DNA of 64,000 bases from Blepharisma stoltei ATCC 30299 (GCA_965603825.1 CBFDEM010000037.1:1-64000), one strand, 5' to 3'. Counted from the stretch's first letter, positions 27,450-64,000 are shown. Numbers and translations are program-made. Notes: generated from the letters alone by a model not told the origin.

Positions 27450-28514
27450 ATATAAATAAATAAACATTCATCTCTCTGTTGCTGTTATTTTAAAATGAAT
27501 TTTAGCAGGTTAAGTTATTTGAAACTTTTAATTTAAAGTAAAATTAAATAATCCTAAACAATTTTCAAAATGCACAATAAAAAGCTATTTGAAAAAGCAA
27601 TGCAAAATTTATATATAAAATTAAGGAATAAATTTTTCCTTTTATGAATTTATCTAAATAAATTTCAATTCTTATATTAAATTTTATTAATTCTAAAGAT
27701 AGATCTATATATTTAATCAAACATTTATTAAATTTATATTTATTTAACTCGATAAATAATTTTCTTAAATAAAATCCCATAAACTTGACTAAATATTTTT
27801 ACTAACCATCTTTTATTTTGGTTTTGCTAAAAATTTACTGATTGCCAATAATTTCATCCTGAATGTTTTACTCAAATTTAATTTATTTTACCTAATGCTC
27901 AAAAAAATCTTTCCTTTAGCTTTTCTTCATATCGATGGTGTATTTATTTTCTATTTAAATATAAAGACCTTAATTTAAACTAAAAATTCATAAGGAAACA
28001 AGAAGCTTTATAAATATCATTAAGATGGAAATATTAAATTATAAATTTATTTCTCCCGAATTCTTTAAATAGAAAATATTTAGCCGCGAATTATATACAA
28101 CCTAGTTAAAAATTCGACATCTTTTGGTCAATTTTCTATCGATTTTTTGGCCCTAGCTAATATTTAAGATTCAATGGAAATAGTTGATAGTTTTTGTTGA
28201 TAAAATTTATCAAAAGCTATCAAAGTTTATTTCAATTCTAAATGTTTCTTATAATTTAATCTAATTAATAACTATATTAATCTTTTAATCCCTTATCAGG
28301 TCCTTGGGTTAAGGCTCCCATAATTATAAAAATTTCTTAATTTGTCGTAAAAATTCCGTCATTTTTATCCAGCTAATAATTTTATTATCTTAATTTGAAC
28401 CTCTGGCTCCACAATCTTCCATAATTTAAGTTTATAAGCTAAATTTTATTGTTAAAAAGGGTCACTTAAGTTAAGGATTTTTTTCCATTGTTCAAAAATT
28501 TACCTATTAAAGCC
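27450..28514 (+). promoter_or_regulatory. ~1 kb extremely AT-rich non-coding region upstream of the giant gene
   Basis: No credible ORF on either strand; lies directly 5' of ATG 28515. Specific elements not identifiable. Confidence 0.35.
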
Positions 28515-31500
28515 ATGGCTTATAAAAATATGTTTAAGCGATTTCTTCTTTGCTTTATCATAGCTTTTATGCAGCTTCATGCTGCTGAAGTCGCTGATTC
28601 GAGCGTTCCTCTTGCTAAAATGAGTGAGATGTTTAACTTTACGTTGACATCTGACTATGCGGGTATTGAAGACCCTCCTCAAAAGAATATATCTGTGATG
28701 AGAGAGCCTCAAGGATCAAGATATGGAAGAGCTCTTTTGGTCACTCCCTGTTCTCCTGGGAATTATGACAACTCAGGTATTTGCTCACCTTGTGGGACAA
28801 TGTGCGCTTATTGTGATGACAATGGAAACTGTTTGGGCTGCCAAAACAACTATACAATGATAATCAGCTCAAATAAAAAGGACTGCGAGTGTAACGATGC
28901 TACTGCTACAGCTGGAACCTGCATTTGTCCACAAGCTAATCCTTGGTTTGATGGATCGACTTGCCAAACTTGTGAATCAGGCAGTTATTATGGAAGCTCT
29001 GGATGCACTGCTTGTTCAACATCAGGGTCTATTAGAGTTAGATCAATGATCAAAGCCAAGAAAAGTCCAAGCTGCTGTCCTGACGGCAAATATTTAGATA
29101 GCTCAAATTCAAAATGTTCAACTTGTGATGCAAACTGTGAGCTTTGTGAAGATGGAGCTGCTGGCCGTTGTGATAAATGCACTAAAAAATTAATTTTGGC
29201 GTCAAAAGTTAAAATAAAGAAAACTTCTTGTTGTGTCGATGGACAGTTTAGAAGCAGCACTGTTAGTTCATGCACACCATGCCCTGATGTGAATTGCAAT
29301 CAATGTGCAGATAGTGGAAGTGGGAATACTTGCATTCAATGTTCAAAAACCTTTACCGTTACATCAAGACTTAAAGTGAAGAAAACTTCTTGCTGTGACG
29401 AAGGAAAATTTAGAAGCAGCACTGTTAGTCCATGCACACCATGCCCTGATATTAATTGCAAATACTGTGAAGATAGTGGAAGTGGGAATAATTGCCTTCA
29501 ATGTGCAAAGACCTTAACTGTTGCAGATACACTTCAAGTAAAGAAAACAACATGCTGTCAAGAAGGAAAATTCGTAAGCAGCTCTCAAGCAAGTTGTGCA
29601 AACTGTCCTGACTTAAATTGCAAATTCTGCGAAGACAGTGGAAGTGGGAATACTTGCCTTCAATGCGCAAAGACATTAACCGTCGCAGCAAATGTTAAAA
29701 TTAAGAAAACTTCGTGCTGTGTCGAAGGACAATTTAGAAGCAGCACTGTTAGTTCATGCACACCATGCCCTGATACTCATTGCAAATACTGTGCAGATAG
29801 TGGAAGTGGGAATACTTGCATTCAATGCGCAAAGACCTTAACTGTCGCATCAAGTCTTAAAGTGAAGAAAACTTCGTGCTGTGTAGATGGACAATTTAGA
29901 AGCAGCACTGTTAGTTTATGCACACCATGCCCTGATACTAATTGCAAGCAATGCGAAGACAGTGGAAGTGGGAATACTTGCATTCAATGCTCAAAAACCT
30001 TTACCGTTGCATCAAGACTTAAAGTGAAGAAAACTTCTTGCTGTGACGAAGGAAAATTCGTAAGCAGCACTGTTAGTCCATGCACATCATGCCCTGATAT
30101 TAATTGCAAATACTGTGAAGATAGTGGAAGTGGGAATAATTGCCTTCAATGTGCAAAGACCTTAACTGTTGCAGATACACTTCAAGTAAAGAAAACAACA
30201 TGCTGTCAAGAAGGAAAATTCATAAGCGGCTCTCAAACGACTTGTGCAAGCTGTCCTGACTCAAATTGCAAATTCTGTGAAGACAGTGGAACTGGGACAA
30301 ACTGTCTCCAATGCCAAAACACCTTATCCTTAGCGAATAAGGTGAAAATTAAAAAGACCTCTTGCTGTTTAGAAGGATTTTATGTTAGTAGTAGTCAAAC
30401 TACATGTGCAGCCTGTGCTAGCCCGAATTGCAAATACTGTGAAGACAGTGGAAGTGGGGATACTTGCCTTCAATGCTCAAATCTTATAACGATGACTCCC
30501 AAACTGAAAGTAAAGAAAACTACTTGTTGTGATGATGGGTATTTCATTAGCAGCACTACCACTCAATGCACAAAATGCCCTGATACTAATTGCAAGCTCT
30601 GTCAAGATAATGGAAGTGGGAACACTTGCATTCAATGCTCCAATCTTTTAACTGTTACAGATACTTTGAAAATAAAGAAAACATCATGCTGCGACGCTAA
30701 AAACTTTGTTAGTGACAAGCATTCTTCATGCACCGCCTGTAAAGACTCAAACTGTCAATACTGTGAGGATAGTGGAGACGGAGACAATTGTCTTCAGTGC
30801 TCAAAGACCTTCTCTTTCTCAGATAAACTTCAAGTAAAGAAAACATCATGCTGTCAAGAAGGAAATTTTGTAAGCGGCTCTCAAACGACTTGTGCAAGCT
30901 GCCCTGACTCAAATTGCAAATTCTGTGAAGATAGTGGAACTGGGACAAACTGTCTCCAATGCCAAAACACCTTATCCTTAGCGAATAAGCTGAAAATTAA
31001 AAAGACCTCTTGCTGTGACGAAGGATTTTATGTTAGTAGTAGTCAGCTTACGTGTGCAGCCTGTGCTAGCCCGAATTGCAAATACTGTGGAGACAGTGGA
31101 AGTGGGAATACTTGCCTTCAATGCTCTGATCTTTTGACGATGACTACCCAACTGAAAGTAAAGAAAACTACTTGTTGTGATGATGGGTATTTCATTAGCA
31201 GCACTACAACTCAATGCACAAAATGCCCTGATGAAAATTGCAAACAATGTACAGACAGTGGAAGTGGGAACACTTGCATTCAATGCTCCAATCTTTTAAC
31301 TGTTACAGATACTTTGAAAATAAAGAAAACATCATGCTGCGACGCTAAAAACTTTGTTAGTGACAAGCATTCTTCATGCACCGCCTGTAAAGACTCAAAC
31401 TGTCAATACTGTGAGGATAGTGGAGACGGAGACAATTGTCTTCAGTGCTCAAAGACCTTCTCTTTCTCAGATAAACTTCAAGTAAAGAAAACATCATGCT

Positions 31501-34500
31501 GTCAAGAAGGAAATTTTGTAAGCAGCTCTCAAACGACTTGTGCAAACTGCCCTGACTCAAATTGCAAATTCTGTGAAGACAGTGGAACTGGGACAAACTG
31601 TCTCCAATGCCAAAGCACCTTATCCTTAGCGAATAAGCTGAAAATTAAAAAGACCTCTTGCTGTGACGAAGGATTTTATGTTAGTAGTAGCCAGCTTACA
31701 TGTGCAGCCTGTGCTAGCCCGAATTGCAATTACTGTGAAGACAGTGGAAGTGGGAATACTTGCCTTCAATGCTCTAATCTTTTAACTGTGGCAGATACTT
31801 TGAAGATTAAGAAAACAACATGCTGTGATGAAGGAAAGTACATTACCGGTACTAAAACCCAATGTGAAAATTGTGCTGATTCAAATTGCAAATTCTGCGA
31901 AGACAGTGGAACTGGAACAACTTGTCTTCAATGCAAGAAGACCTTATCCTTCACAGACGCACTTCAAGTAAAGAAAACATCATGCTGTCAAGAAGGAAAA
32001 TTCATAAGCGGTTCTCAAACGACTTGTGCAAGCTGCCCTGACTCAAATTGCAAATTCTGTGAAGACAGTGGAACTGGGACAAACTGTCTCCAATGCCAAA
32101 ACACCTTATCCTTAGCGTATAAGGTGAAAATTAAAAAGACCTCTTGCTGTGACAAAGGATATTATGTTAGTAGTAGTCAACTTACATGTGCAGCCTGTGC
32201 TAGCCCGAATTGCAATTACTGTGAAGACAGTGGAAGTGGGGATACTTGCCTTCAATGCTCTAATCTCTTAACGATGACTCCCCAACTGAAAGTAAAGAAA
32301 ACAACTTGCTGTCTTGATGGGTATTTCATTAGCAGCACTACCACTGAATGCACAAAATGCCCTGATACTAATTGCAATATCTGCGAGGACAGTGGAGCTG
32401 GTTCAAGTTGTCTCCAATGCGCTAAAACTTTATCAATTTCAGATACTTTGAATATTAAGAAAACCACTTGTTGCAATGAAGGAAAATTTGTAAGCGCTAC
32501 TCATTTACAATGCTCAAACTGTGCTGATTCAAATTGCAAATACTGTGAAGATAGCGGAGAAGGTACAGTTTGCAATCAATGCAAAAAGACATTTAGCTTT
32601 ACAGATACTTTGGAGATAAAGAAAACATCATGCTGTAGTGAAGGAAAATTTGTTAGCGATGCTCACACTGCATGTATAGCTTGTGACAGCCCAAATTGCA
32701 AATACTGTGAAGATAGTGGAGACGGGGAAAAATGTCTTCAATGCTCTAATCTCTTAAGCTTTAGCAACACTCTCAAAATAAAGAAAACGACTTGCTGCCC
32801 AGATGGACAATATGTTAGTAGCACTCAAGCAACCTGCGCGCCATGTGCTGACAATAAATGCAGCATTTGTGAGGATAGTGGATCTGGCACAACTTGTCTT
32901 AAATGCTCTGGAATTTTAACTGTTTCTGACACTTTGAATATAAAGAAAACGACTTGCTGTGAAGATGGGAAATTTGTTAGCGGCACTAATCCTGCATGCA
33001 CTAACTGCTTTGACAGCAACTGCAAGATCTGTGAAGATAGCGGGGATGGAAAAGTTTGTCTTGACTGTGCTAAAAAGCTTAAATTTACAGACACCCTCAA
33101 TATCAAAAAGACCACATGCTGCACTTTAACTACTTACCTAAATGGAGGTAAATGTGACCCTTGCCCTAGCAAATGTGATGCCTGTGAAGATGTGACCGGT
33201 GAATGTATAACATGTTCAGAAAAAGTCAAGTTCACTGGCTCCTTAGTGAAGCCATCATCATGCTGCGTAGATGGAACTTATTATAGCGGTGGCACTTGTG
33301 TGTCCTGTGATGAAACTTGTGCTACCTGCGATAAAGATACTGGAAAATGCCTTACTTGTCTGGATAAGATGGAAAGAGACTCAGATAGCGATGACATGAA
33401 ATGCAAGTGTATAGGTGACCAAACTCAGTCAGGGAAAGTCTGCTCATGCCCAATTGGGAAGTTTTTCAATGGACAAGTATGCTCAGTCTGTGGCCATTTC
33501 TGCGACACTTGCACCTTGGATAGTGTCACTTGCAAAACTTGCATTGATCAATCAAGAATGATGCTGAATACCGATAAGCCTGCTGAATGCAAGTGCAAAG
33601 GAAATAATCAACAAGAAAAAGCAAATGGATCCGGCTGCATCTGTAAAACCCCAGACACTTATTTCAAAAATGATGACTGTATTTCTTGCGGCGTGAACTG
33701 TTTAATTTGTGACGATACTGGAGGTTGCACATCTTGTGTGAAAAATGTAGCGCTAAAAGGTAGCTTAACTGATCCAGCTTTATGCTGCGCATCAGGGAAT
33801 TATTATGACTCAGTAAATCTACGTTGTATTCCTTGTGAGGAAAATTGTGCTACCTGTGATGCCCACACTGGAGTATGTGCTACTTGCAAGAAATCGAAGA
33901 TGGAGGTGGACCCAACAAATACCAAAACTTGCCACTGCATCGGAGACCAAGCATTAGTTGGAGGAGAATGCACATGCTCACAAGGATTATTTTTTAATGG
34001 GCAAACATGCTCATCTTGTGGCACTTTCTGCAAAACTTGTGAGGACAATACCGGTAAATGCTCGGCCTGTATTGACAGTGACAGAATGAATTTAAGCACT
34101 ACCAATAATAAAGTATGCGAATGCAAAGGAGTCAATCAAACACCAACAGCCACCAGCTGCACCTGCGCTGCAGGCAAATATTTCAGCAATGGCGACTGTG
34201 TAAATTGTGATAGCACTTGTCCTGACTGTGATGCTATCACTGGAAATTGCAAGACTTGCGTTGATACTTCTTCAAGAATGGCAGTCTCTCAGTCTGACTC
34301 AAAGAAATGTCAATGTCTCGGATCGCAACAGCTTGTCTCCAATCAATGTTCTTGTGCCTCAGGCTCTTATTATGCAGGCAGCACGTGTGAGACATGCGGT
34401 GACAACTGTCAAATCTGTGCCGATCTCTCAGGACAATGTAGCTCCTGCAAATCTTCAAGAATGATTTTTGACTCAAATGACTCAAAGAAATGCGTCTGCA

Positions 34501-37500
34501 AAGCTGGCCAACATCTAGTAGGGTCTGACTGTGTTTGTGATGAAGGGACTTATTATGACACAAACAATAAAGTTTGCATACCATGTGAGTCTAGATGTGC
34601 CACCTGCTCTGACGATGGAACTTGCATTACTTGCAAAGAGGGCAGAAAAATGGATTTAGACGCAAATCTGCCAAAGACTTGCAAATGCAAATCAGATCAA
34701 ACTACTGGACTTGATTGTTCTTGTGCTACTGGAAGCTACTTTGATACTTCAATTTCTAATTGCAAATCATGCGAAACCAACTGTTTAGCTTGTTTAGACT
34801 TCACTGGCGATTGTACATCTTGCAAAAAGAATATAGCTTTTACAGGAGATCTGATTGACCCAGCGACTTGCTGCCTAACAGGAACTTACTATAGTAACGG
34901 AGGCTGTGTACCCTGTTCAGATAAATGTGCAGAATGCGACATACATACTGGGAAGTGTACTAAATGCAAGGAGGAAAGCAAAATGATATTTGATGATACT
35001 GATGAGAAAAAATGTAAATGCGCAGGTGACCAACTGTATGTTTCAGAAAAATGCACATGCCCTGACAATCAAAAGTTTAACGGATTAGTGTGCTCCACTT
35101 GTGGCACTTTTTGCAAAGTCTGTGCAGATACAACTTTGATTTGCACCGAATGTCTTGATAGCTCAAGAATGCAATTTGGTGCATCAGATAATAAAATCTG
35201 TGAGTGTAAAGGATCAAGCCAAACTACAACTGCAACTGGCTGTGAATGTGCTGTTGGAAAATACTTTACAAACAACGGCTGCGCTCCATGTGGGTCACTT
35301 TGTGCAGCCTGTGCAGATACCACTGGAATTTGCAGCTCTTGCAAAGATATCACTATGACAAAAAGTGATGATAATTTAAGTTGCAAATGTAAACCAGGTC
35401 TTCAGCTCGATGAACAAGCAGGCACTTGTAAATGCTCTTCAGGCTACTACTTCGATAGTAACACCTGCCAGCCTTGCGGAACTCACTGTTCTGTTTGCGA
35501 CTCAACTAGATGCTCTGTGTGTGATAGTATCAGCCATCTTATTGTTGATCCATCAAACCGCAACAATTGTATTTGTGAAAGCAGCTATTATTGGATTGTA
35601 GCAAATAATGACTGTGAGCAATGCGCTGAAGGAACTTATTATGACGGAAGCAAATGCTCTAGCTGTTCCACTAACTGTAAAGCCTGCGATAATTTCACTG
35701 GGAAATGCAATACTTGTGCTGGCGGAGATAGAATGGAATTTGATCCTACGGATGACAAAGCTTGCAGATGCAAAGGAAATCAAATTCTTAGCGGGCTGAC
35801 TTGCTCTTGCAGCTCAGGATCTTACTTTGATAGCCTTACTTGCTCTCCATGCTCTGAATTATGCGCTGTCTGCACAGATTTGACTGGAGAGTGCACAAAA
35901 TGCAACGATGAAGCTTTAATGACTATCGACTCACAAAACAATAAAAACTGCAAATGCAAGTTTTCTGACCTAACAGCTGTATCAGGCCAGTGTGTCTGCA
36001 CTGGAGGCAAGCAATGGAATGGATCTGAATGCTCTAGTTGTGGAAACTTCTGTAAAACTTGTAATGTAGTAAGCAATGTCTGCACTGAGTGTACAGACAG
36101 CGCAAGAATGGACCCGGTAAGCAGCAGTGTTACTTGTAAATGCAAAACTAGCTTTATAACCTCGGCAGCTGGCTGCACTTGTGCTGCAAGCTCTTACTAT
36201 GACAACTCAGCATGTTTTACTTGTGGAGATTTATGCTCTACCTGTGCAGATATTTCGGGCGATTGTACTGCTTGCAAAGACAGCACTATGGAATTCCATC
36301 CTACTAATAAGAAAATCTGTAGATGCAAAGGAACTCAGCAGTATAGCACCGTGCTAAGCACTTGTACATGCCCAATTGGATATTTCGACGGCTCTACTTG
36401 TCAGAGCTGCACAACTCTTTGTTTAACTTGTGATTCAACTAAGTGTTTAACTTGTCAAAATATTCTCCATCTTGTGGTTGACACCCAAAACCCTAAAGAT
36501 TGCGTCTGCGCTAGCGGCTACAATTGGATTACAGCAAGCGGCAGTTGTGAGCAATGCTCTGTTGGAACTTACTACGATGGCAACAAATGTGCTAGCTGCT
36601 CAGCTATGTGTGCTACTTGCTCTGGGCTGACTGGCACTTGTGATACTTGTAAAGACACCGCTAGGATGGCTCTTAGTGGAACCACATGCATTTGTAAAGG
36701 AAATCAAAAGTTAACCGGATCTACATGCTCTTGTGATGCAGGATACTACTTTGATGGCTCGACATGTCTTAAATGTTCAAGCTTATGCAGTGCTTGTAAA
36801 GATTATACCGGAGTATGCACAACATGTAAGGATTCGAAAATGACATTCGATTCAAACGACAACAAAAACTGTAAATGTATTGGAGATCAGATTCTTAGCG
36901 GGGAGACTTGCACCTGTCCTAGCAACCAACAATTCAACGGAAATGGGTGTTCTACTTGCGGTGAATTCTGTAGTACTTGTGATGTTAATAATATTGTCTG
37001 CAGCACTTGTATAGATGGAAATAAGATGTCACCTGTGAGTGGTACTGTAACTTGTGCCTGCAAAGGAAATCAACTTAAAGCAAACGCCGGCTGTACTTGC
37101 CCGTCAGGCTCTTACTTTGATAGCTCAACTTGCTCAACTTGCGGTGATTTATGCACTACATGCACAGATACAACTGGTGTCTGCACTGTCTGTAAAAGTG
37201 ATAAAATGGAAGTTAACCCTACTAATCAAAAAGTTTGTAGATGCAAAGGAACTCAACAGTACAATACCATAACATCCTCTTGCTACTGTCCTACTGGATA
37301 CTACGATGGCTCGACTTGTCAGAGTTGCACAACTCTTTGCTCAACCTGTGACTCGACTAAATGTTTAACTTGTCAAGCTATTGCCAACCTTATAGTAGAC
37401 CCTCAAAACCCAACTAACTGTGCCTGTGCGAGCGGTTACAATTGGATTACAGCAGCGGGCAGTTGCGATAAATGCTCTGATGGAACTTATTACGATGGCA

Positions 37501-40500
37501 GCAAGTGTGTTAGCTGCGCTGCTACATGTGCTACTTGCTCTGGGCAGATTGGCACTTGCAATACTTGCAAAGACGCTGCTAGGATGAATCTTAGTGGAAC
37601 CACATGCATTTGCAAAGGAACCCAAAAACTAACTGGATCAACATGTTCTTGTGATGCAGGATACTACTTTGATGGATCTACTTGTGTTCAATGCTCAAGC
37701 CTGTGCGCCTCTTGCAACGATTACACTGGTGAATGCAAATCTTGCAAAGATTCGAAAATGACTATTGACCAAGCCAATAAGAAGAACTGTATATGTATTG
37801 GAGATCAGACTCTTGACAATGGATCATGCACTTGCCCTATCGGTCAACAATTTAATGGTGACAAATGTTCTGAGTGCGGAACATTTTGCAATTCTTGCAG
37901 CAAAACTTCAGGAATAATATGTAACATTTGTATTGATTCTGTAAAGATGCTTGCAGTTTCTGGAACTACTACTTGTTCATGCAAAGGCGACCAAACTGCA
38001 ACAGTAAGCGGCTGTTCCTGTCCTGCCGGATATTACTTTAAAGACACAAAATGCACTCAATGCGGTAGCTTATGTTCTTTATGTGCAGATACAACAGGAA
38101 TTTGTAGCACCTGCAAAAATGGTTCTACAATGGAAGTAAACCCTAGCGACACCACAACTTGTAGGTGTAAAGGAACCCAGCAATACAATACCGCTTTATC
38201 GGCTTGTGCTTGCCCTGTTGGCTATTTTGATAACGACACCTGTAAGAGCTGCACAACTCTTTGCTCGACCTGTGACTCCACCAAGTGTTTAACTTGCCAA
38301 TCCATTGACCATCTTGTAGTTGACACCCAAAACCCTAAAAACTGTGTCTGTGCTAGCGGCTACAACTGGATTACCGCTAAAAGCACTTGTGAACAATGTT
38401 CTTCAGATATGTATTACGATGGCAACAAGTGTGCTAGCTGCGGAACTAATTGCGCAACTTGTTATGACGGGACTGGAGTTTGCAAAACCTGTAAGAGCTC
38501 AAGAATGGAAAAAGGAAGTGACCCTACTAAATGCATTTGCAAAGGAACCCAAAAGTTAACCGGATCTACATGCTCTTGCGATGCAGGGTACTACTTTGAT
38601 GGAGATACATGTGTTCAATGCTCAGATTTATGCAGCACTTGTGAAGATTTAACTGGAGTATGTAAAACATGTAAAGACTCGAAATTAATGACATTCGACT
38701 CAAACGATAATAAAAAATGCAAATGTATTGGAAACCAAGTTCGTAGCGGTGATACTTGCACCTGTCCTAGCAACCAACAATTCAACGGAAATGGATGCTC
38801 TACTTGCGGTGAATTTTGTGATACCTGTAATGTCAATTCTAACGTATGTAGCGCATGTATAGATATAAATAAGATGTCACCTGTGAGTGGTACTGTAACT
38901 TGTGCCTGCAAAGGGAATCAACTTAAGACAAACGCCGGCTGTACTTGCCCGTCAGGCTCTTACTTTGATAGCTCAACCTGCTCAACTTGCGGTGATTTAT
39001 GCACTACATGCACAGATACAACTGGTGTCTGCACTGTCTGTAAAAGTGATAAAATGGAAGTTAACCCTACTAATCAAAAAGTTTGTAGATGCAAAGGAAC
39101 TCAACAGTACAATACCATAACATCCTCTTGCTACTGTCCTACTGGATACTACGATGGCACAACTTGTCAGAGTTGCACAACTCTTTGCTCAAACTGCGAC
39201 TCGACCAAGTGTTTAACTTGCCAAGCTATTGCCAACCTTATAGTAGACCCTCAAAACCCAACTAACTGTATCTGTGCCAGCGGATACAATTGGATTACAG
39301 CAACGGGCAAGTGTGAACAATGCTCTGTTGGAACTTACTACGATGGTAACAAATGTGCTAGCTGCGCTGCTAATTGTGCAAGTTGCTATGACGGGTCTGG
39401 AACTTGTAAAATCTGTAAAGACCCTAATAGGATGGATCTTAGCGGAACGATATGCACTTGCAAAGGAACCCAAAAACTAACTGGATCAACATGTTCTTGC
39501 GATTCAGGCTATTACTTTGACGGATCTACTTGTGTCCAATGCTCAAGCTTATGCTCCTCTTGCTCAGATTACACTGGCGAATGCAAAACTTGCAAAGATT
39601 CGAAAATGACTATTGACTCAGCCAATAAGAAGAACTGTATATGTATCGGAGACCAGGTACTTAACAATAATATGTGTACATGCCCTGGAAGCAAACAATT
39701 TAACGGATCTGGATGTTCTGATTGCAGCACTTTCTGTTCAAATTGCAATGTTGGCTCTAATACCTGCAACACTTGTTTAGATGGAAACAGGATGTCTCCT
39801 GTAAGCAACACTCTAACATGTGCCTGCAAAGGAAATCAAATAGCAAATAATGATGGTTGCGGTTGTCCTTCAGGCTCTTACTTTGATAGCTCAACTTGCT
39901 CGACTTGCGGTGATTTCTGCACTACATGCACAGATATATCTGGTGTCTGCACTGCCTGTAAAAGTGATAAAATGGAAGTTAACCCTACTAATCAGAAAGT
40001 TTGTAGATGCAAAGGAACTCAACAATATAGCTACACGCTATCCTCCTGCTACTGCCCTACTGGATACTACGATGGTTCAACTTGTCAGAGTTGCACAACT
40101 CTTTGCTCGACCTGCGACTCGACTAAATGTTTAACTTGTCAAGGTATTGCAAACCTTATAGTAGACCCTCAAAATCCAACTAACTGTGTCTGTGCGAGCG
40201 GATACAATTGGATTACAGAATCGGGCAAGTGTGAACAATGCTCTGTTGGAACTTATTATGATGGTAACAAATGTGTTGCCTGCTTAGATAATTGTGCAAG
40301 TTGTTACGATAGAACTGGCTATTGCAAAGCATGCAACTCAAGATTTACTCCAAGTACCATCAACCCAGCTAAATGCATTTGCAAAGGAACCCAAAAATTA
40401 ACCGGATCTATATGCTCTTGTGATGTAGGGTACTACTTTGATGGAGATACATGTGTTCAATGCTCAGATTTATGCAGCACTTGTGAAGATTTAACTGGAG

Positions 40501-52500: not shown

Positions 52501-55500
52501 TGGTGAATGCAAAACTTGCAAAGATTCGAAAATGACTATTGATGCAGCCAATAAGAAGAACTGCATATGTATCGGAGATCAGGTACTTAACAATAATATG
52601 TGTACATGCCCTGGAAGTAAACAATTTAACGGCGCTGGATGTTCTGATTGCAGCACTTTCTGTTCAAATTGCAATGTTGGCTCTAATACCTGCAACACTT
52701 GTTTAGATGGAACCAGGATGTCTCCTGTAAGCAACACTCTAACTTGTGCCTGCAAAGGGAATCAAATAGTAACTAATGCCGGTTGCAGTTGTCCTTCAGG
52801 CTCTTACTTTGATAGCTCAACCTGCTCAACTTGCGGTGATTTCTGCACTACATGCACAGATATATCTGGTGTCTGCACTGCTTGTAAGGATAGTAAAATG
52901 GAAGTTAACCCTACTAATCAGAAAGTTTGTAGATGCAAAGGAACTCAACAGTACAATACCGTAACATCCTCTTGCTACTGCCCTACTGGATATTACGATG
53001 GTTCAACTTGTCAGAGTTGTACAACTCTTTGCTCAACTTGTGATTCGACCAAGTGTTTAACTTGCCAAGGTATTGCCAACCTTATAGTAGACCCTCAAAA
53101 CCCAACTAACTGTGTCTGTGCCAGCGGCTACAATTGGATTACAGAATCGGGCAAGTGTGATCAATGTTCTGTTGGAACTTATTATGATGGTAATAAATGT
53201 GCTGCCTGCTCAGATAATTGTGCAAGCTGTTACGATAGAACTGGGTTCTGTAAAGCATGCAACTCAAGATTTACTCCAAGTCTTGTCGAACCAACTAAAT
53301 GCATTTGCAAAGGAACCCAAAAGTTAACCGGATCTACATGCTCTTGTGATGCAGGGTACTACTTTGATGGAGATACATGTGTTCAATGCTCAGATTTATG
53401 CAGCACTTGTGAAGATTTAACTGGAGTATGTAAAACATGTAAAGACTCGAAATTAATGACATTCGACTCAAACGATAATAAAAAATGCAAATGTATTGGA
53501 GATCAGATTCTTAGCGGTGATACTTGCAGCTGCCCTAGCAACAAACAATTCAATGGACTTGGGTGCTCTAGTTGTGGTGAATTTTGTAGTGCTTGCGATG
53601 TTAATAATATAGTCTGCAACACTTGTTTAGATGGAAGCAAAATGTCTCCTGTAAGTAACACTCTAACTTGTGCCTGCAAAGGGAATCAACTTAAAACAAA
53701 TACTGGCTGCACTTGTCCGTCAGGCTCTTACTTTGACAGCACAACTTGCTCGACTTGCGGTGATTTCTGCACTACATGCACAGATACAACTGGTATCTGC
53801 ACTGTTTGTAAAGATAGTAAAATGGAGGTGGACCCTGCTAATCAAAAAGCTTGCAGATGTAAAGGAACTCAAAAATATAGCTACACGCTATCTTCTTGCT
53901 ATTGTCCAACTGGATACTACGATGGCTCGACTTGCCAAAGCTGCACAACTCTTTGCTCGACCTGTGACTCGACTAAGTGTTTAACTTGCCAAGGTATTGC
54001 CAACCTTATATTAGACCCTCAAAACCCAAGTAACTGTGTCTGTGCCACCGGCTACAATTGGATTACAGCAACGGGCAAATGTGATCAATGCTCTGTTGGA
54101 ACTTACTACGACGGCTCCAAATGTGCTAGCTGTTCAGATAATTGTGCAAGTTGTTATAACGGTAGTGGATTTTGTGCTATCTGCAAGGACTCAAGAATGA
54201 TGATAAGCACAAGTGACCCAGCAAAATGCATTTGCAAAGGAACCCAAAAACTAACTGGATCAACATGTTCTTGCGATGCAGGATTCTACTTTGACGGATC
54301 TACTTGTGTTCAATGCTCAAGCTTATGCACATCTTGCTCAGATTACACTGGCGAATGCAAAACTTGCAAAGATTCGAAAATGACTATTGATGCAGCCAAT
54401 AAGAAGAACTGCATATGTATCGGAGATCAGATACTTAACAATAATATGTGTACATGCTCTGGAAGCAAACAATTCAACGGATCTGGATGTTCTGATTGCA
54501 GCACTTTCTGTTTAACTTGCAATGTTGGCTCTAATACCTGCAACACTTGTATAGATGGAAACAAAATGTCTCCTGTAAGCAACACTCTAACTTGTGCCTG
54601 CAAAGGGAATCAAATCGCAACAAATGCTGGTTGCAGTTGTACTTCAGGCTCTTACTTTGATAGCTCAACCTGCTCAACTTGCGGTGATTTCTGCACTACA
54701 TGCACAGATATATCTGGTGTCTGCACTGCTTGTAAGGATAGTAAAATGGAAGTGGATCCTACTAATCAGAAAGTTTGTAGATGCAAAGGAACTCAAAAAT
54801 ATAGCTACACGCTATCCTCTTGCTACTGTCCTACTGGATATTACGATGGTTCAACTTGTCAGAGTTGCACAACTCTTTGCTCAGCCTGCAACTCGACCAA
54901 GTGTTTAACTTGCCAAGCCATTGATCATCTTATTGTTGATACCCAAAACCCTACAAACTGTGTTTGTGCCAGCGGCTATAACTGGATTACCGATAAAAGC
55001 ACATGTGAGCAATGCTCTGTTGGAACTTATTATGATGGCAACAAATGTGCTAGCTGCGCTGCTAATTGTGCAAGCTGCTACGATAGAACTGGGTTCTGTA
55101 AAGCATGCAACTCAAGATTTACTCCAAGTCTTGTCGACCCAACTAAATGCATTTGCAAAGGAACCCAAAAGTTAACCGGATCTACATGCTCTTGTCATGC
55201 AGGGTACTACTTTGATGGAGATACATGTGTTCAATGCTCAGATTTATGCAGCACTTGTGAAGATTTAACTGGAGTATGTAAAACATGTAAAGACTCGAAA
55301 TTAATGACATCGGATTCAAACAATAGTAAAAAATGCAAATGTATTGGAGATCAGATTCTTAGCGGTGATACTTGCAGCTGCCCTAGCAACAAACAATTCA
55401 ATGGACTTGGGTGTTCTGCTTGTGGTGAATTTTGTAGTTCTTGTGATGTTATTAATATAGTCTGCAACACTTGTATAGATGGAAATAAGATGTCACCTGC

Positions 55501-58500
55501 TATTGGAGCTGTAACTTGTTCCTGCAAAGGGAATCAACTTAAAACAAATACTGGCTGCACTTGCCCGTCAGGCTCTTACTTTGACAGCACAACTTGCTCG
55601 ACTTGCGGTGATTTCTGCGCTACATGCACAGATACAACTGGTATCTGCACTGCCTGTAAAGATAGTAAAATGGAGGTGGACCCTGCTAATCAAAAAGCTT
55701 GCAGATGTAAAGGAACTCAAAAATATAGCTACACTCTATCTTCTTGCTATTGTCCAACTGGATACTACGATGGCACAACTTGTCAGAGTTGCACAACTCT
55801 TTGCTCAACCTGTGACTCGACTAAGTGTTTAACTTGCCAAGGTATTGCCAACCTTATAGTAGACCCTCAAAACCCAACTAAATGTGTCTGTGCGAGCGGC
55901 TACAATTGGATTACAGCAAGCAGCTCCTGTGATCAATGCCCTGTTGGAACTTACTTCGATGGCTCCAAATGTGCTGCCTGTTCAGATAATTGTGCAAGTT
56001 GCTATAACGGTAGTGGATTTTGCGCTGTTTGCAAAGACTCAAGAATGATGATAAGCACAAGTGACCCAGCAAAATGCATTTGCAAAGGAAACCAAAAACT
56101 AACTGGATCAACATGCTCTTGTGATTCAGGCTATTACTTTGATGGATCTACTTGTGTCAAATGCTCAAGCTTATGCACATCTTGCTCAGATTACACTGGC
56201 GAATGCAAAACTTGCAAAGATTCGAAAATGACTATTGATCCAGCCAATAAGAAAAACTGTATTTGTATTGGAGACCAAATACTTGACGGTAACAACGCAT
56301 GCACTTGTTCTGGAACTAAACAATTCAATGGTGCTATATGCTCTGATTGTGGAACCTTCTGTACGACTTGCAATGTAAATCCAAAAGCATGTAGTGTCTG
56401 TTTGGGAAACAGAATGGAACCAGTAAGCGGCACTGTTACTTGTGCTTGTAAAGGAAATCAACTAGTCTCAGCTAGTGGCTGCAGTTGTCCTGCAGGCTCT
56501 TACTTTGACAGCACAACATGTTTGGCTTGTGGCACTTTTTGCACGGCTTGTGATGACTTAACTGGAAAATGCAATACATGTAACTCTGTAACTATGGAAG
56601 TAAGCGACAGTGATCCAAAATCTTGTAAATGCAAAGGAACTCAAGTATATAGCAGCGTTTTATCCTCTTGCTACTGCCCCACTGGATACTTCGATGGCTC
56701 TACTTGTCAGAGCTGCACAACTCTTTGCTCAACCTGTGACTCAGCCAAATGCTTAACTTGTCAGTCTATTGCAAACCTTATAGTTGACCCTCAAAACCCT
56801 AAAAATTGTGTCTGTGCAGCAGGCTTCAATTGGATTACCGCAACCAGCAGCTGTGAGGTATGCGAAACTGGAACTTATTATGATGGAAACAAATGTGCCA
56901 GCTGCACAACGAATTGTGCAAGTTGTTATTACGGCACTGGAGTCTGCGCTTTATGCAAAGACACCAGAATGGCAATAAATGTGAATGACTTGACAAGCTG
57001 CATCTGCAAAGGAAACCAAAAGATTAGTGGATCTACATGCTATTGCGATTCAGGCTATTACTTTGACGGATCTAATTGTGTCCAATGCTCAAGTTTATGC
57101 ACATCTTGCTCTGATTACACTGGAGAATGTCTTTCTTGCAAAGATTCGAAAATGATTATTGATCCAGCCAATAAGAAAAACTGTATATGTATTGGAGACC
57201 AAATCCTTGACGGTAACAACGCATGCACTTGTACTGGAACTAAACAGTTTAATGGCAAGGGATGCGTGGATTGCGGATATTTCTGTAGCACTTGCGATGT
57301 ATCTCATAATACATGTAACACCTGTATTGACTCAGTCAGAATGGAACAAGTAAGTAACACTCTTACCTGCCAATGCAAAGGAAACCAAATCGCAAATATT
57401 GGCTCTTGCACTTGTCCTTCAGGCAACTATTTCGACAATTCAAATTGCCAAGCTTGTGGCGATTTATGTGCAGCATGCGATGACTCAACTGGAAAATGTA
57501 ATACATGCATAAACACTGCAACTATGGAAATAAGCAGCACTGATTCAAAGACTTGTAAATGCAAAGGAACCCAACAATATAGCAGCCTAACGAAATCTTG
57601 TTCCTGCACTTTAGGCTACTTTGATGGCTCAACTTGTCAGAGCTGCACAACTCTTTGTTCTTCTTGTAATGCAACTAAGTGTTTAGCTTGTCTTAGTATT
57701 GACAATCTTGAAGTAGATCCTACCAATCCAACAACCTGTCATTGCGCCGCTGGATATAACTGGATAACTGCGACTAACACTTGCGAGCAATGCCAAGCTG
57801 GAACTTACTATGATGGAGATAAATGCGCTCCTTGTTCTACTAACTGTGCTAAATGCTATAATGGCTCTGGAGTCTGCAGCGTCTGCGTAGATACAAGAAT
57901 GGACATTGGCTTAAATGATTTGACTAGTTGTGTATGTAGAGGAAACCAAAAGATCAGCGGATCCACATGCTCTTGCGACTCAGGCTATTACTTTGATGGT
58001 TCCAATTGCGTGAAATGCTCTGACTTGTGTGCTACTTGCCTTGATTACACTGGAGTTTGTACAGCATGCAAGGATACTGCGAAGATGACCTTTGATACAG
58101 CAAACAAGAAGAATTGCAAGTGCATTGGAGACCAAGTACTTAGCAACAATGTATGTACTTGCACTGGAACTAAGCAATTCAATGGCTCTGGGTGCTCTGA
58201 TTGCGGAACGTTCTGCTCCACTTGCAATGTAAACACGAAGGTCTGCAACACTTGTCTTGATACAGTTAAAATGACAGCAGTTTCTGGCACAGTAACTTGC
58301 TCATGCAAATCTGGTCAGCAAGTCACAGCGACAGGCTGTATTTGTGCTTCAGGATCATATTTCGACACTACAACGTGCTCAGCCTGCGGTAGCTTATGTG
58401 CTGCATGTGCTGAAACAACTGGCAAATGTTTAACATGCAAAAACTCGGTAACTATGGAATTCGGCACTGATCCAAAGACTTGCAAATGCAAAGGCACTCA

Positions 58501-61500
58501 GCAGTACAACAGTGATACAGCTTCATGCTACTGCGCTTCAGGCTACTTCGATGGCTCAACTTGTCAGAGTTGCTCTGCCCTTTGTTCTACATGCGATTCT
58601 AGTAAGTGTTTGACTTGTCAAAATATTGCTAACCTTGAAGTTGATATTACAAATCCTAAGACTTGCCATTGTGCGGCCGGCTATAAATGGATAGTAGCAA
58701 AGAGCACTTGTGAGCAATGCGCTACCGGAACTTATTATGATGGAAGCAAATGTGCTTCCTGCTCCACCCACTGTGCAAGCTGTCTTGATGGACTTGGAAT
58801 ATGCGGAAAATGCACTGATTCAAGAATGACACCAAACCTACTTGACTTAACTAAATGCATTTGTAAAGGAAACCAAATTGTCAGTGGATCAACATGCACC
58901 TGTAACTCAGGTTTCTACTTCAATGGCGAAAATTGTGTTCAATGCTCTAGCTTATGCAGCACTTGTTTAGATTACTCTGGGCAGTGCACATCGTGTAAAG
59001 ATTCTCAAACAATGATATTTGACCCAGTCAACAATAAAGCTTGCAAATGCATCGGTGATCAGTACCTTAGCAATGGTGTATGCACTTGTGATGCTGGCAA
59101 ACAATTTAATGGTGAAATTTGCTCTACCTGCGGAAACTTTTGCAAGACTTGCAATCTTTTAGCAAATTCCTGTAGCGCCTGTATAAACGATAGCACAATG
59201 ACAACAGTTGCTGGCACAGCAGCTTGTTCATGCAAATCTGGTCTAAATACCATAGCAACAGGCTGCACGTGTAATTCAAACTCTTACTTTGACGGCTCCA
59301 AATGTTCTGCCTGTGGTGATTTATGCGATACTTGCGCTGATACCTCTGGAAAATGTAATACATGCAAAAATATGGCAACTATGGAATTCACTGCTGATCA
59401 AAAGAATTGCAAATGTAAAGGCACTCAACTATACAACAGTAATACAGCTTCGTGCTACTGCGCTTCAGGCTACTTCGATGGCTCTACTTGCCAGAGTTGC
59501 TCTTCCCTTTGCTCAACTTGTAATTCTGCTAAGTGCTTAACTTGTCAAGCCATCGACAATCTTATAGTTGACTCGACGAATCCAAAGACTTGCAAATGTG
59601 CCAGCGGATACAAATGGATTGTATCAGGTAGCACCAGCACCTGCGGGAAATGTTTATCTGGCACTTATTATGATGGAACCAAATGCTCTAGTTGTTCAAC
59701 CAACTGTGCTACATGTTATGAAGGATCTGGGTTATGTCGAACTTGCAGTGACTCTTTGAGAATGCAAAAGAATCCAAGTGACTTAAGTAAATGTATTTGC
59801 AAAGGAAACCAAAAGGTCACTGGATCAACATGCTCTTGCGATGCAGGCTACTATTTTGATGGCAACAATTGTGTCCAATGTTCAGACTTATGCAAAACCT
59901 GCAAAGATTACACTGGTGAGTGTCAGGAGTGTATTGATTCAACTAAGATGATGGTTGATACAACAAATAAGAAAAACTGTAAATGCATAGGCGATCAAAC
60001 TCTTTCTAATAAGCAATGCATTTGCTCAGGAAATAAACAATTCAACGGTTCTGTATGCTCTGATTGCGGCTATTTCTGCAGCACTTGTAACACTGGAACT
60101 AAGACATGCTTAACTTGTGTTGATTCTAGAAGAATGGCACCAGTCAGTGGCACCACTACTTGCGCATGTAAGTCAAATCAAATTACAAATACTAACTCTT
60201 GTTCCTGTGCTTCTGGCTCTTACTTTGATGACGTAACATGTCCTAGTTGCCAAAACAAATGCGTTAGCTGTAAAGGCTTGTGTGCTACCTGCGATGATTA
60301 CACTGGAAATTGTCAAACTTGTAAAGACACTGCAAGAATGGATATTGACCCTGCAGATAAAACAAATTGCAAATGCAGAGGAACCCAACAGCTTGCCACT
60401 GGAACCTCTACTTGCAGCTGTGCAGCAGGTACCTATTATAATGGAACTACATGTCTTAAATGCGGAGATCGCTGCGCCACATGTGAGAACTACACTGGAA
60501 ATTGCAAAACTTGCCTTGATTCTTCTAGAATGAGCCTTTCTGGTAAGACTTGCCAATGTAAAGGAAACCAGCAATCCAGCTCTACCGCATGCTCTTGCTA
60601 TCCAAATCAATACTATGACGGATCAACTTGCCAATCTTGTGGCAAAAACTGTAAGACTTGCAAAGACACGACTGCAGAATGCACATCATGTTATAGTAAT
60701 TATGCCCTTGAACAAATAGCTCTCCCATTAGTATGTTCTTGTCCTGCTAAAACCTATGATGTCATTTCAGGCTGCAATCCTTGTGGAACAATGTGTGCTT
60801 CTTGTTTGAATGCAGGAATTTGTTCAACTTGCAACGATGATACAGTTCAAGAACTCGACCCAAATAATAGCCAGAACTGTAAATGTAAAGCTGCTACCTA
60901 CTATGATGGCACAACCTGCAAGAGCTGTGGAACTTACTGTGCTGCATGTGAAGCAACCAAATGTACTCAATGTGTGGACACAGATAATATGATTTACAAT
61001 ACTATTAAGGCTCACAATTGTGAATGCAAACTCGGAATGTACTATGACGCTAATTCAGCTAAATGTGTCAGTTGTATGGATAAATGCAATGTTTGTAGCA
61101 GTGGCACAAGCTGTACTACTTGTGAAAGCGGATATTATTTCGATGTGCCTACGTCTAGCTGTAAAGTGACTACATGTGACTCTGGAACTTATTATGATGA
61201 AAACTCGTGTAAAGCATGTTCTGCTCCTTGTTTGGCTTGCTCCAGCTCAACTTTCTGTTATACTTGTATTACAGCTGACTTTTCAATTGACGCCAGAGCT
61301 GGAACTTGCAACTGTGTGGCTGGTAAATGGTATAAGTCTTCTAGTAAGACTTGTGAGCTCTGTGGCCAGTACTGCTCAACTTGCACAGGATCAGCTGAAT
61401 TCTGCTCAACTTGTATTGATTCTACTATGACTTATAATGCAGTAACAGGAGTGTGCACATGTCCAGCGAAAACTTATTTCAGTACAGGAGTCTGTAAGAG

Positions 61501-64000
61501 CTGCGCTGATCCTTGTTCGAATTGCAGCAGCCTGACGTTCTGTTTAAGCTGTGTTGATGCTACAATGACCTTGGCAGCAGCTACTGGTGTTTGTAGGTGT
61601 AAGGATGGATTTTACTTTGATTCAGCAAGTCATAAGTGTTTGGCTTGCGATGTTACATGTGCTACCTGCTCTAGCTCATCAAGTTGCTCTACTTGCAAAG
61701 ATCCTACAATGTCTATTAGTGCCGGTGTTTGTACTTGTCCTGCTCGCCAATATTTCGACACTCAATCTCTGTCCTGCAAGAACTGCGATGCTACCTGTGG
61801 AAAATGCACAAACTCTTCTTCATCATCTTGCACTGCTTGCAGAGATGCAGCTATGACTTTGACCAATGGAGTTTGTACTTGTCAAAGCACCCAATATTTC
61901 AATTTGGTTACAAACGCCTGTAAGACCTGCACTGGACCTTGCAAGAGCTGTACCTCTGATACTTTCTGCACATCTTGTCTTGATACAGCTACTCTCAATT
62001 CTCAAACCGGAGTCTGCTCATGTGCTGACGGCCAATACTTTAACTCTACCCTTTCCAAATGCACAACTTGCAATGGTCTCTGCGACACCTGCTCCTCATA
62101 CTCAACCTGCATAACTTGTGTTGATAAGACAAACCCAATCTCCAATGGTGTATGCACATGTGCAAACGGATACTATGCCTTAGATAAACAATGTGTTAAG
62201 TGTCCTTCCCCATGCTCAACTTGTTCCAGCGCCACAGTATGTACTGGTTGTAAGAAACACGCAACTCTAAATAACTCAAGCAAAAAATGCACTTGTGACA
62301 GAGGCTATGGCCTTAATAGCACTGATACTTCTGGATATTGTGTTGCTACTTGTAATAAGCTTTGCACTGTTTGTGACATTGATAATGCCAATCTTTGCTC
62401 TAGTTGTGTGACAAATGCTGAGCTTACAGGAACAGCTTGTGCTTGTACTGCTAATTCTGCATATAGTAGTGCAGCTGGAGGGTGCGCTTGCAATGCAGGG
62501 TATACTTTGTCAAATAGTAAGTGTGTGGTATGCAAGAGGTATCTTGCACCAAGTGACTTATTGTCTGCTGAATTCAGCTCGTCGTGGACGTCAATTTCTA
62601 TTAATTTCAATACAAAGGTGGACACCTCAGTTGACCCGTCCTGCTCGAAAACTTTCACCGCAGCAACAGTAGCCTTGTTTGGAACTGGTGCAGTTTGCTC
62701 ATGGACTGATAAAAAGACACTCAAAATAGCGTTAGGCACTGGCTTTTCACTGAGGTATAGCACTCTTTATTTGGATGGGACTTATATTCTGAAAGATTCT
62801 ACTGATCCTTGCACTACTAACTATCAGCCTCTTTCGCTGAATCCAACAGCTACATCTAGTCCTGTTCCAGCAGCAGTTATAACTGGCCAATCCAGCTTTA
62901 CTTTAGGCTGCGGATCTGATCCTCTTACATTCTCTGGTGACAAATCTACAGGATCTCTAGGAAATAATTTATCTTACCTCTGGGCCGTTACTTCAATATC
63001 TCCAGCTAACTCCAAAGTATCGGACGCCATCAATAAGAAAGCAACTGCTTCAATTTCTATAGACCGTTCCTACTTTGACTCAACTACCACGACTACAGTG
63101 ACTGTCAGTTTAACAGTGACCAATTTCTTGACCATTTCAAACACTGCTTCCTTTACAACCACAGTCACTGGTGGAAATGCATTGACAGTAATATTTGACC
63201 AAGGCAATACAGTCTCTATGAAATCTTCAACGTCTAAAACACTTAAAGCAAAAGTCACTTCTCTCTGTGGAACAACTACTGGAACTATCACTTGGGCATG
63301 GAGCTACGACAGCGGGCCGACAATAGACTCTGCCTCAATTCTTGCTAACGCAAATGCAGATAAGCTAACTATTAATGCGAATGCTTTGGCAGCAAGCTCT
63401 ACTCCATATGTATTTAAAGCAACTGCTTCACAAGTCAGCAATGGGTCGACAATTACAGGAAGTGCCACTATTTCAGTTACAGTAACCGCTTCACCATTAA
63501 GTGTTGGGCTATCTAAAACAAGTGGAGATGTTTCTCCTGACAGAGACTATACTGTTAACGCCCAAAATTCAAAAGACCCTGACAATCCTAGCTCGACTTA
63601 CAACGATTTCAAATATAAGTGGACTTGTTTGAATAGCTTAGATAACAGTGCATGTGTAGGAGCTGATGGCAAGACTCCTTTGAGTAGCGATACTGACTCC
63701 ACTTTGACTATTCCTTCATCACAAATGGTTAAAGGAGCCCAATGGGAGATTACTTGCACTATATCTAAAGACACAAGAACCGCATCTGCTACAATATCTC
63801 TAAATATTCTGAGCAAGACATCTGACGTCTCAATTGAAATTGAATACAAAGTCGAAAAGTTTAGCCTATCCTCGAATATTGTGATAACTGCTCAAGTCAC
63901 AGCTGCTTCTACAGCTACTTTGAAATGGACTGAAAATTCAGGATCAATCAGCATTTCTCCTAACTATTTGTCTACAATGTCTGTGCCTTCTAGTCAGCTA
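28515..64000 (+). CDS. Giant Cys-rich-repeat surface protein with REJ/PKD-like region (polycystin-1-like architecture), >11,800 aa, runs off the window; two +1 frameshifts (~45390, ~51657)
   Basis: Signal peptide MAYKNMFKRFLLCFIIAFMQLHA, then CxxC furin-like repeats throughout. Track ORFs 28488-45425 and 45358-51666 and an unterminated frame 51659-64000 continue the same repeat register across single-base insertions. Cys-poor beta-rich region from ~62520. Confidence 0.85.
29217..33122 (+). repeat. 24 tandem 162-nt (54-aa) coding repeats, KKT[ST]CC...C..C.D.NC..CEDSG.G..C.QC
   Basis: 25 KKT[ST]CC anchors; first at 29217 and last at 33105 (3888 = 24 x 162). 4-unit higher-order period of 648 nt (track ORFs 30709 vs 31357). 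Confidence 0.95.
35400..60200 (+). repeat. About 27 tandem ~918-930-nt (~308-aa) coding repeats, each five ~61-aa 10-Cys modules, with an 1848-nt higher-order period
   Basis: One Y[NYK]WI/FNWI anchor every ~918-930 nt from ~35590 to ~59615. Shadow ORFs recur at 1848-nt spacing (37054/38902, 40744/42592, 47207/49055, 51822/53670). Confidence 0.95.
62520..64000 (+). other. REJ/PKD-like domain region of the giant protein
   Basis: Frame from 62522 reads LLSAEFSSSWTSISINFN...ALFGTGAVCSWTDKKTLKI...PVPAAVITG...LTFSGDKSTGSLGNNLSYLW...VSLTVTNFL...LTINANAL...VNAQNSKDPDNP...FKYKWTC...LTIP...ISKDTRTASAT, typical of REJ (PF02010)-type modules. Confidence 0.78.

Follow-up and report, generated by a model that had tools for sequence, protein, structure and literature searches.

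A 37.8-kb cysteine-rich gene of the ciliate Blepharisma stoltei ends in a half polycystin-1 of the REJ-GAIN-TM1-5 type

The window analysed here, positions 1-64000 of contig 37 in the somatic genome of Blepharisma stoltei ATCC 30299 (64,000 nucleotides, at a telomeric end of the contig), raises the question of whether a ciliate encodes a polycystin-1-like surface receptor of more than one megadalton. A first-pass annotation of the window had proposed such a protein, beginning at position 28515 with a signal peptide, continuing through ~34 kb of CxxC repeats and still open at the last base in a REJ/PKD-like region. Here the gene was followed into 68 kb of downstream contig, with the window numbering continued along contig 37 for coordinates above 64000. 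It runs on the plus strand from an ATG at 28515 to a stop at 66325, 2.3 kb beyond the window, and its conceptual protein has 12,602 amino acids (aa), a mass of 1.33 MDa, 1,830 cysteines and 594 CxxC motifs. The gene is real and kept by purifying selection, and it is a PKD1/REJ-family member carrying a "half polycystin-1", that is, a REJ domain, a GAIN domain and five transmembrane (TM) helices modelled as the equivalent of TM1-5. The explanation that we favour, while leaving real room for others, is that this copy is intact and encodes a giant half-polycystin-1 receptor, to which a sensory role may be assigned by analogy.

The assembly comprises 41.46 Mb in 64 contigs. It was made with Flye from PacBio HiFi reads (145x), and the genome paper describes 64 telomere-to-telomere contigs with the telomere unit CCCTAACA, UGA decoded as Trp, and introns of 15/16 bp (bioRxiv 10.1101/2021.12.14.471607). 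Because UGA is Trp in B. stoltei, only TAA and TAG were taken as stops in our translations. The conceptual protein was made by skipping two extra bases, which are considered below, and placing an X at each break. Coordinates of all features are collected in Table 1.

The identity of the gene is carried by its C-terminal 1,268 residues (62,519 to the stop). Searched against Pfam, this segment matched REJ (PF02010) with E=1.4e-26 and 93.6 bits (cut-off 25) over profile positions 11-423 of 452, and a six-frame search of the genome recovered the same domain at contig 37 63278-64408 with 95.7 bits. The piece confined to the window (60002-63997, Cys-rich sequence plus a partial REJ domain) gave no Pfam match, and one full-length paralogue searched whole gave no Pfam REJ match; REJ goes unseen in such long queries because the long Cys-rich context masks it, so that the domains need to be searched separately. 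Once the full domain was searched, the REJ region proposed in the first-pass annotation was thus recovered. The switch at ~62,520 to a region that is not Cys-rich and is open at base 64000 was also found, since the sequence becomes Cys-poor and rich in Ser and Thr there and its frame runs on to 66325.

Both elements predicted to follow the REJ domain, GAIN/GPS and transmembrane segments, lie past the window end. An AlphaFold2 (AF2) model of this C-terminal chassis, built with an alignment of 35 relatives, had a mean predicted local distance difference test score (pLDDT) of 80.6, with 378 residues at or above 90 and a GAIN domain above 90. Foldseek placed GAIN domains at the top of the structural neighbours (BAI3, 4dlo, E=2e-8, then BAI2, GPR110, CELSR1 and latrophilin), and VIA-align gave a Z of 19.3 to BAI3. 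While phmmer with the C-terminal 1,268 aa found no match among PDB sequences, the profile of the 35-member family did reach the GPS of adhesion G-protein-coupled receptors (aGPCRs), matching the GPS region of ADGRF1 with E=6e-5. In the GPS-like strand a His is present in 33 of the 35 members and a Ser or Thr at +1 in 32, and the residue at -1 is F, T or L. Where the polycystin-1 family has HL|T/S, this protein reads H-F-S (H12262-F-S12264), a putative site at which autocleavage between F and S is uncertain.

A hydropathy scan of the whole protein found hydrophobic segments at the N-terminus and in five C-terminal helices only. The modelled membrane region (model residues 356-663) superimposed on PC1 3072-3623 (PC1, polycystin-1; 9l0w_A) with Z 19.8 and a root-mean-square deviation (rmsd) of 2.8 Å over 193 aa, and eight other PC1/PC2 cryo-electron microscopy entries matched the TM bundle with Z 18.7-19.7. 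Against an aGPCR holoreceptor (8ikj) the rmsd was 20.8 Å, the membrane part matching PC1 and not the aGPCR 7TM domain. By its modelled fold the five-helix bundle is the equivalent of PC1 TM1-5. The loop between TM1 and TM2 (model residues 393-488) had pLDDT below 50, and the protein ends ~15 aa past TM5. No match to PLAT (PF01477) or PKD_channel (PF08016) was obtained for this protein or for the 35 aligned members, all of which lack the channel half TM6-11; the coiled-coil tail is likewise missing here. The polycystin-1/REJ-like identity first assigned to the locus consequently holds for REJ, GAIN/GPS and TM1-5; with both PLAT and the channel half missing, the protein is not a full polycystin-1.

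The gene was compared with two known receptor families. Like PKD1, PKDREJ and suREJ1-3, it has the order REJ, GAIN/GPS, membrane region, and like PC1 it has a large modular ectodomain. Unlike PC1, which contains PLAT and a channel-like half (TM6-11), it has a long cytoplasmic TM1-TM2 loop at the place of PLAT, and instead of PKD/Ig, LRR, WSC and C-lectin modules it carries ~11,280 aa of Cys-rich hairpins; identity to PC1 is only ~14%, and the GPS differs by its missing Cys pair and its Phe at -1. With aGPCRs (BAI3, latrophilin, ADGRF1 and CELSR1) the gene shares the GAIN fold of helical and beta subdomains (VIA Z 16-19), and the cleavage-site His and Ser/Thr are common to this family as well. 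However, aGPCRs continue after the GAIN domain with a secretin-like 7TM domain, where this protein has the PC1-type five-helix bundle, and it has no HormR domain. GAIN domains encoded by Tetrahymena have been reported earlier (PMC3321182).

The same chassis is shared by a family of heterotrich genes. A HMMER search of 1.84 billion representative sequences returned 306 relatives, 82 of them at E<1e-30, and many cover the whole 1,190-aa query and share its end point. The genome itself holds 52 REJ matches in a six-frame profile search, corresponding to ~50 loci. Smaller B. stoltei paralogues are annotated merely as "EGF-like" or "TNFR-Cys domain-containing protein" (for example CAG9312681.1, 3,133 aa), and the search for orthologues in other heterotrichs proposed earlier yielded a Stentor coeruleus homologue, SteCoe_30331. 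These annotated proteins have the same chassis (26-58% identity over ~1,190 residues) and Cys-rich ectodomains too, whereas this gene is 4-9 times longer. One distant family member matches Pfam VSP at 7.6e-19. The family consists of variable ectodomains on a conserved half polycystin-1 chassis, and this gene, first put forward as a candidate for an undescribed system, is its largest member and not a unique system. In the literature on Blepharisma and ciliates that we searched for REJ, polycystin-1 or GAIN, no description of the family was found, the one relevant statement being that on GAIN domains in Tetrahymena, and the genome paper does not mention these genes (bioRxiv 10.1101/2021.12.14.471607).

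Three members lie in tandem on contig 37. Two further copies downstream of this gene (g1), here called g2 and g3, are intact single open reading frames (ORFs) that share with g1 the signal peptide, the plan of the repeats and the REJ-GAIN-5TM terminus. Their C-termini are ~95% identical to that of g1, and what sets the three apart is chiefly how many 54-aa modules and ~308-aa units (11-28) each contains. A further relative on contig 25 is one uninterrupted ORF, with the GPS-like strand VYHFSMYKL.

Purifying selection was observed directly over the last 1,400 codons, where the ratio of nonsynonymous to synonymous divergence (dN/dS) was 0.26-0.31 in all three pairwise comparisons of g1, g2 and g3; the C-terminus of g1 is no more relaxed than those of its intact paralogues. 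Conservation across the 35 family members, down to ~20% identity, is highest in the GAIN core and the five-TM bundle. Within the REJ domain a patch at 63773-64220 (63773-64000 in the window) is only 72-84% identical in amino acids among the tandem paralogues, compared with 92-100% in most neighbouring 50-codon windows, with dN 0.09-0.15 and dN/dS ~0.3-0.8. A part of the disordered TM1-TM2 loop (65573-65722) is similarly variable among them.

Channels that could complement the missing half are encoded elsewhere. At least 35 PKD_channel (PF08016) matches were found in the genome, on many contigs but none on contig 37 and none fused to a REJ gene, which is a large PKD2-like repertoire for a single-celled organism; these channels are candidate partners. 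Some occur as tandem pairs (e.g. C33:527955-536901 and C54:623928-626297).

A mechanism can be proposed in which the protein would be secreted by way of its signal peptide and the GAIN domain would cleave itself at the H-F-S site, leaving a rod of ~12,240 aa held non-covalently on a 339-aa (38-kDa) five-TM fragment. The rod, ~0.5 µm long if extended, would stand out from the surface of the cell or its cilia. Force acting on it, or contact, might strain or shed the N-terminal fragment and expose a tethered stalk peptide, and this would change the five-TM bundle, which would then signal to, or modulate, the separately encoded PKD2-like channels; without TM6-11 the bundle cannot itself form part of a pore. 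By analogy, mechanosensing, adhesion, or contact with mates or prey could all be served in this way, as the first-pass annotation had suggested. On the motile cilia of Chlamydomonas, the mastigoneme (MST1) is a precedent for the coupling of a polycystin to an extracellular hair; it is a Cys-rich glycoprotein anchored by PKD2, for which a mechanosensory role has been proposed (PMC7265326). The analogy is confined to function. Mastigoneme chains (8tx1, 8wa2) are weak fold neighbours of the repeat unit (probability 0.2-0.6) with no homology shown, and MST1 is a separate secreted, polymer-forming protein on the PKD2 channel whereas here the rod is covalently part of the PC1-like chassis.

The same domain order could also belong to an intact protein that is a structural coat or adhesion rod, comparable to ciliate immobilisation antigens or Giardia VSPs, and not a signalling receptor. 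In that case the sole task of REJ-GAIN-5TM would be to anchor the rod and to shed it, and tandem paralogues of differing repeat number would make the surface variable, for instance for pairing in conjugation or for protection. The CxxC-rich periodic ectodomain without a recognisable ligand-binding head fits such a coat, as do the VSP match of a distant relative, the three tandem copies with 11-28 units, the variable patch inside the REJ domain, and a chassis without PLAT, channel or G-protein-type module. A passive anchor, however, needs less than a five-TM bundle (a single TM helix or a glycosylphosphatidylinositol anchor would serve), yet the bundle and the GAIN core are the parts that the family conserves most, the fold match to PC1 TM1-5 is strong, and the same genome holds the large set of PKD2-like channels. 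We regard the coat as a possible but doubtful alternative to the receptor.

What the chassis carries is an extremely long stalk, whose repeat anatomy is observed directly in the translation. The hydrophobic N-terminus (MAYKNMFKRFLLCFIIAFMQLHAA) resembles a signal peptide and is conserved in g2 and g3, as the first-pass annotation had it, and ~60 unique residues separate it from the repeats. The Cys-rich coding stretch occupies 28.7-62.5 kb, the ~34 kb originally claimed, and encodes ~11,280 aa with 16% Cys overall at a steady 15-17%. It contains three classes of repeat where two had been proposed, with unit lengths of 54, ~308 and ~48 aa. Class 1 gives tandem-repeat (TRF) periods of 162/324/486 at 29292-32558, and a spacing of 54 between CxxC cores was seen 23 times. 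Class 2 has blastn periodicities of 924/1848/4615 nt, and its units 7-24 (39165-55780) fall into two alternating types, a and b, which are 92-98% identical within and ~79% identical between types in a nucleotide identity matrix, while the flanking class-2 units are far more diverged. By these identities, units 7-24 form a young array. Since g2 and g3 have the same plan with fewer units, the size of g1 stems from recent tandem amplification of the ~308-aa unit.

In total the stalk contains ~190 disulfide-rich hairpin modules, with the repeated pattern C-x2-C-x3-C-x2-C-x6-C-x2-C ... C-x-C ... C-x-C. An AF2 model of one 308-aa unit (52085-53008, modelled with 22 sister or paralogous units) had a pLDDT of 90.9 and consisted entirely of short beta-hairpins. 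Its neighbours in the PDB were weak (best Foldseek E 7e-3, best VIA Z 4.0) and were all elongated disulfide ladders, namely laminin LE, TNFR Cys-rich repeats, R-spondin furin repeats, the EphA2 cysteine-rich domain and the Chlamydomonas mastigoneme. The stalk resembles LE, TNFR and furin-like repeats and Giardia VSP in forming rod-like arrays of beta-hairpins with ~5 disulfides per ~60 aa, although its Cys pattern is its own and it has no significant match to them; Pfam searches with four Cys-rich stretches of the stalk gave no usable match. LE and TNFR rods measure ~0.45-0.6 Å per residue. On that basis the stalk would be ~0.5-0.65 µm long if fully extended and straight, and the micrometre scale first suggested is generous.

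The reading frame of the gene is the point at which this account is most exposed. Apart from two shifts of one nucleotide, a stop-codon scan found no in-frame TAA, TAG or TGA in 37.8 kb. The ORF listing of the window contained only 28488-45425 and 45358-51666 and omitted the rest, as noted in the first-pass annotation, although in the third plus-strand frame no stop occurs between 51611 and the end of the window; this last part is missing because it runs off the window. As assembled, the frame order along the gene is 0, 1, 2. The claim that the gene is intronless stands, because it contains no 15-nt GTAA..TAG intron candidate and each of its six matches to the 16-nt intron pattern would break the frame if spliced. 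The claim of a single protein of more than 11,800 aa fares less simply: the conceptual reading exceeds that length, but two single-base insertions mean that the assembled sequence is not one open frame. If the two frameshifts are errors, the product is one 12,602-aa, 1.33-MDa membrane protein of type-I-like topology.

Both frameshifts sit in b-type units of the young class-2 array, and neither insertion is in a homopolymer. Mini-introns were considered as a cause of the frame changes and rejected, since neither junction holds a GT..AG 15/16-mer and, against 8-9 sister copies, exactly one base is inserted at each site. Programmed +1 frameshifting was rejected as unnecessary, there being no stop or slippery context, and one contig lacking the extra base at frameshift 2. 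That contig came from a short-read check with Logan contigs of four runs (X1, X2, X3 and X7) over 48701-54700 at 98% likeness or above, an interval that covers frameshift 2. A single spanning contig (run X3, depth 65.7) lacks one letter at 51657; runs X1, X2 and X7 have no contig in the bin 51501-51700, and the reference form occurs in none of the four runs. The X3 contig shows no further difference near 51657, whereas sister copies differ there by at least four substitutions within 60 nt, so the contig belongs to this gene copy. One run with the in-frame form and none with the reference form favour a consensus error at frameshift 2, which is probably an assembly error. For the pair, consensus errors of the long-read assembly inside a near-identical array are the most likely explanation, and we put the case that both are artefacts somewhat above an even chance. 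The single filament of more than 1 MDa proposed for this locus depends on both being errors; for frameshift 2 one contig speaks in its favour. The same check showed a joint of 52285 with 53294, skipping 1,008 nt, in contigs of X1 and X3, runs that may be of RNA, and not in the two DNA-like runs; it most likely arose through k-mer collapse of repeat units, with a shorter length variant as a lesser possibility.

If the frameshifts are instead real, the copy is broken. Translation would be confined to the first ORF, a signal peptide followed by Cys-rich repeats totalling ~5,660 aa, with its TAA or TAG near 45500. The copy would then yield a secreted, untethered Cys-rich protein or be a very young pseudogene, and receptor function would fall to the intact g2 and g3. 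In favour of this, both insertions are present in the deposited HiFi-based assembly, outside homopolymers, and the tandem paralogues make one copy dispensable. Against a broken copy, the copy-specific contig lacks the extra base at frameshift 2 while no run holds the reference form, the sequence downstream of frameshift 1 is free of stops for more than 20 kb in the shifted frames, and the C-terminal dN/dS is as low as in the intact paralogues. Moreover, both shifts fall in b-type units, which are nearly identical and in which errors of consensus polishing are most to be expected. We consider a broken copy unlikely.

It is improbable that the gene is real and its extreme length an artefact of an over-expanded or mis-joined a/b array (39.2-55.8 kb), with a true size nearer 6,700-9,300 aa: 18 units 92-98% identical within type, two consensus indels in the same array and the 1,008-nt joint (a shorter variant or repeat collapse) would suit it, but HiFi reads at 145x can normally tell apart repeats of 0.9-4.6 kb with a 2-8% difference, the units are no exact duplicates, their copy-specific substitutions following an ordered pattern, the 9,336-aa relative was assembled as one clean ORF, and such joints are the usual product of k-mer contigs in repeats.

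Several points weigh against the intact giant receptor that we favour. The short-read evidence bears on frameshift 2 alone; it comes down to one Logan contig, taken from a run that is RNA or DNA by guess only, and the gap that the other three runs show at the site proves nothing. A search of public proteins with the unique N-terminus, in the 3,094-9,843-aa range, found only paralogues of 33% and 29% identity; no protein identical to g1, g2 or g3 was present there, and there is no independent gene model. The GPS is atypical, with the Cys pair before the His missing and Phe, not Leu, at -1, and the Pfam GPS match is below threshold (E=0.11, 13.5 bits against a cut-off of 22.5). Cleavage, location, partners and sensory role are drawn by analogy with PC1 and aGPCRs. 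The lack of TM6-11 rules out a role as pore subunit like that of PC1, and the stalk length is an estimate from module dimensions and not a measurement on coordinates.

If the copy is nevertheless intact, ~190 disulfide modules, 1,830 Cys and 1.33 MDa in one intronless 37.8-kb ORF would represent an extreme of protein size, and its 12,602 aa would be among the largest known protist proteins. Such a rod raises questions about how it folds and is secreted, and about a possible surface sensor of micrometre range in a large contractile ciliate. There is also an annotation problem, as the public proteins of the length range searched include none of the three giants of contig 37, and the largest of these contains two probable consensus errors.

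The family may bear on polycystin-1 itself, which is mutated in the autosomal dominant form of polycystic kidney disease and whose signalling through the ectodomain, GAIN cleavage and the TM1-5 bundle is still debated. REJ-GAIN-TM1-5 without PLAT or the channel half, beside dozens of stand-alone PKD2-like channels, amounts to a natural dissection of PC1, and the ciliate family could reveal the part that the N-terminal half plays by itself and whether a fusion gave rise to PC1. More speculatively, the two halves of polycystin-1 might be encoded by separate genes in heterotrichs, with ~50 REJ-GAIN-TM1-5 sensor halves bearing interchangeable ectodomains beside separate PKD2-like channels, a picture of the ancestor of PC1 before fusion in which the present gene would form a mechanosensory or contact-sensing hair of ~0.5 µm and ~190 modules on the cortex or cilia. 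As a whole we think this scenario quite unlikely, and offer it tentatively.

Table 1. Features of the giant REJ-family gene and its relatives (window numbering, continued along contig 37; contig 25 in its own numbering)
Feature	Position	Strand	Basis or remark
Start codon; predicted signal peptide of aa 1-25 with cleavage near HAA/EV	28515..28589	+	translation, hydropathy, conserved in g2/g3
Repeat class 1, ~24 tandem 54-aa (162-nt) Cys-rich modules and transition zone	29115..33677	+	
Repeat class 2, 28 units of ~308 aa, each five ~61-aa modules with 10 Cys	33678..59488	+	
Frameshift 1	45391	+	extra T, AAATA[T]CTGGC, against 9 paralogous repeat copies (alignment); frame 0 to 1
Frameshift 2	51657..51659	+	one extra base, CAGA[G]TTC, against 8 paralogous copies (alignment); frame 1 to 2
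Degenerate class-2 units, then class 3 (~10 modules of ~48 aa), stalk end	59489..62518	+	core spacings 48/41+7, translation
Cys-poor, S/T-rich, beta-rich linker before the REJ envelope	62519..63277	+	translation; no Pfam family of its own
REJ domain (PF02010)	63278..64408 (window part 63278..64000)	+	hmmscan
GAIN domain	64397-65335	+	AF2 model: seven-helix subdomain and beta-sandwich
Putative cleavage site H-F-S (H12262-F-S12264)	65300-65308	+	
TM1	65393-65482	+	hydropathy, AF2 model
TM1-TM2 loop, ~100 residues, disordered, acidic, cytoplasmic, at the place of PLAT in PC1	between TM1 and TM2	+	
TM2-TM5	65861-66289	+	hydropathy, AF2 model
Stop codon	66323-66325	+	
Paralogue g2, intact single ORF, 6,695 aa	contig 37 73162-93249	+	one in-frame TGA (Trp)
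Paralogue g3, intact single ORF, 7,353 aa	contig 37 98344-120405	+	one in-frame TGA (Trp)
Relative, one uninterrupted 9,336-aa ORF	contig 25 327626-355636	-	signal peptide, 13.9% Cys, REJ, GPS, five-TM tail

Within the gene, two antisense ORFs are open on the minus strand (window 28988-30379, 463 aa, and 32216-33133, 305 aa); their openness seems to follow from the scarcity of stops in the repeats, and they do not look like genes. The next gene downstream (contig 37 66801-69383) is convergent on the minus strand, encodes ~860 aa that include a region of TPR-like repeats, and has four TGA codons in frame (Trp). It is unrelated to the receptor and is followed by a gap of 3.8 kb before g2. At the other end of the window, positions 1-1770 consist of ~1.77 kb of CCCTAACA-type telomeric repeat, and coding-like sequence begins almost directly after it, with an ORF at 1748-3076 when UGA is read as Trp.

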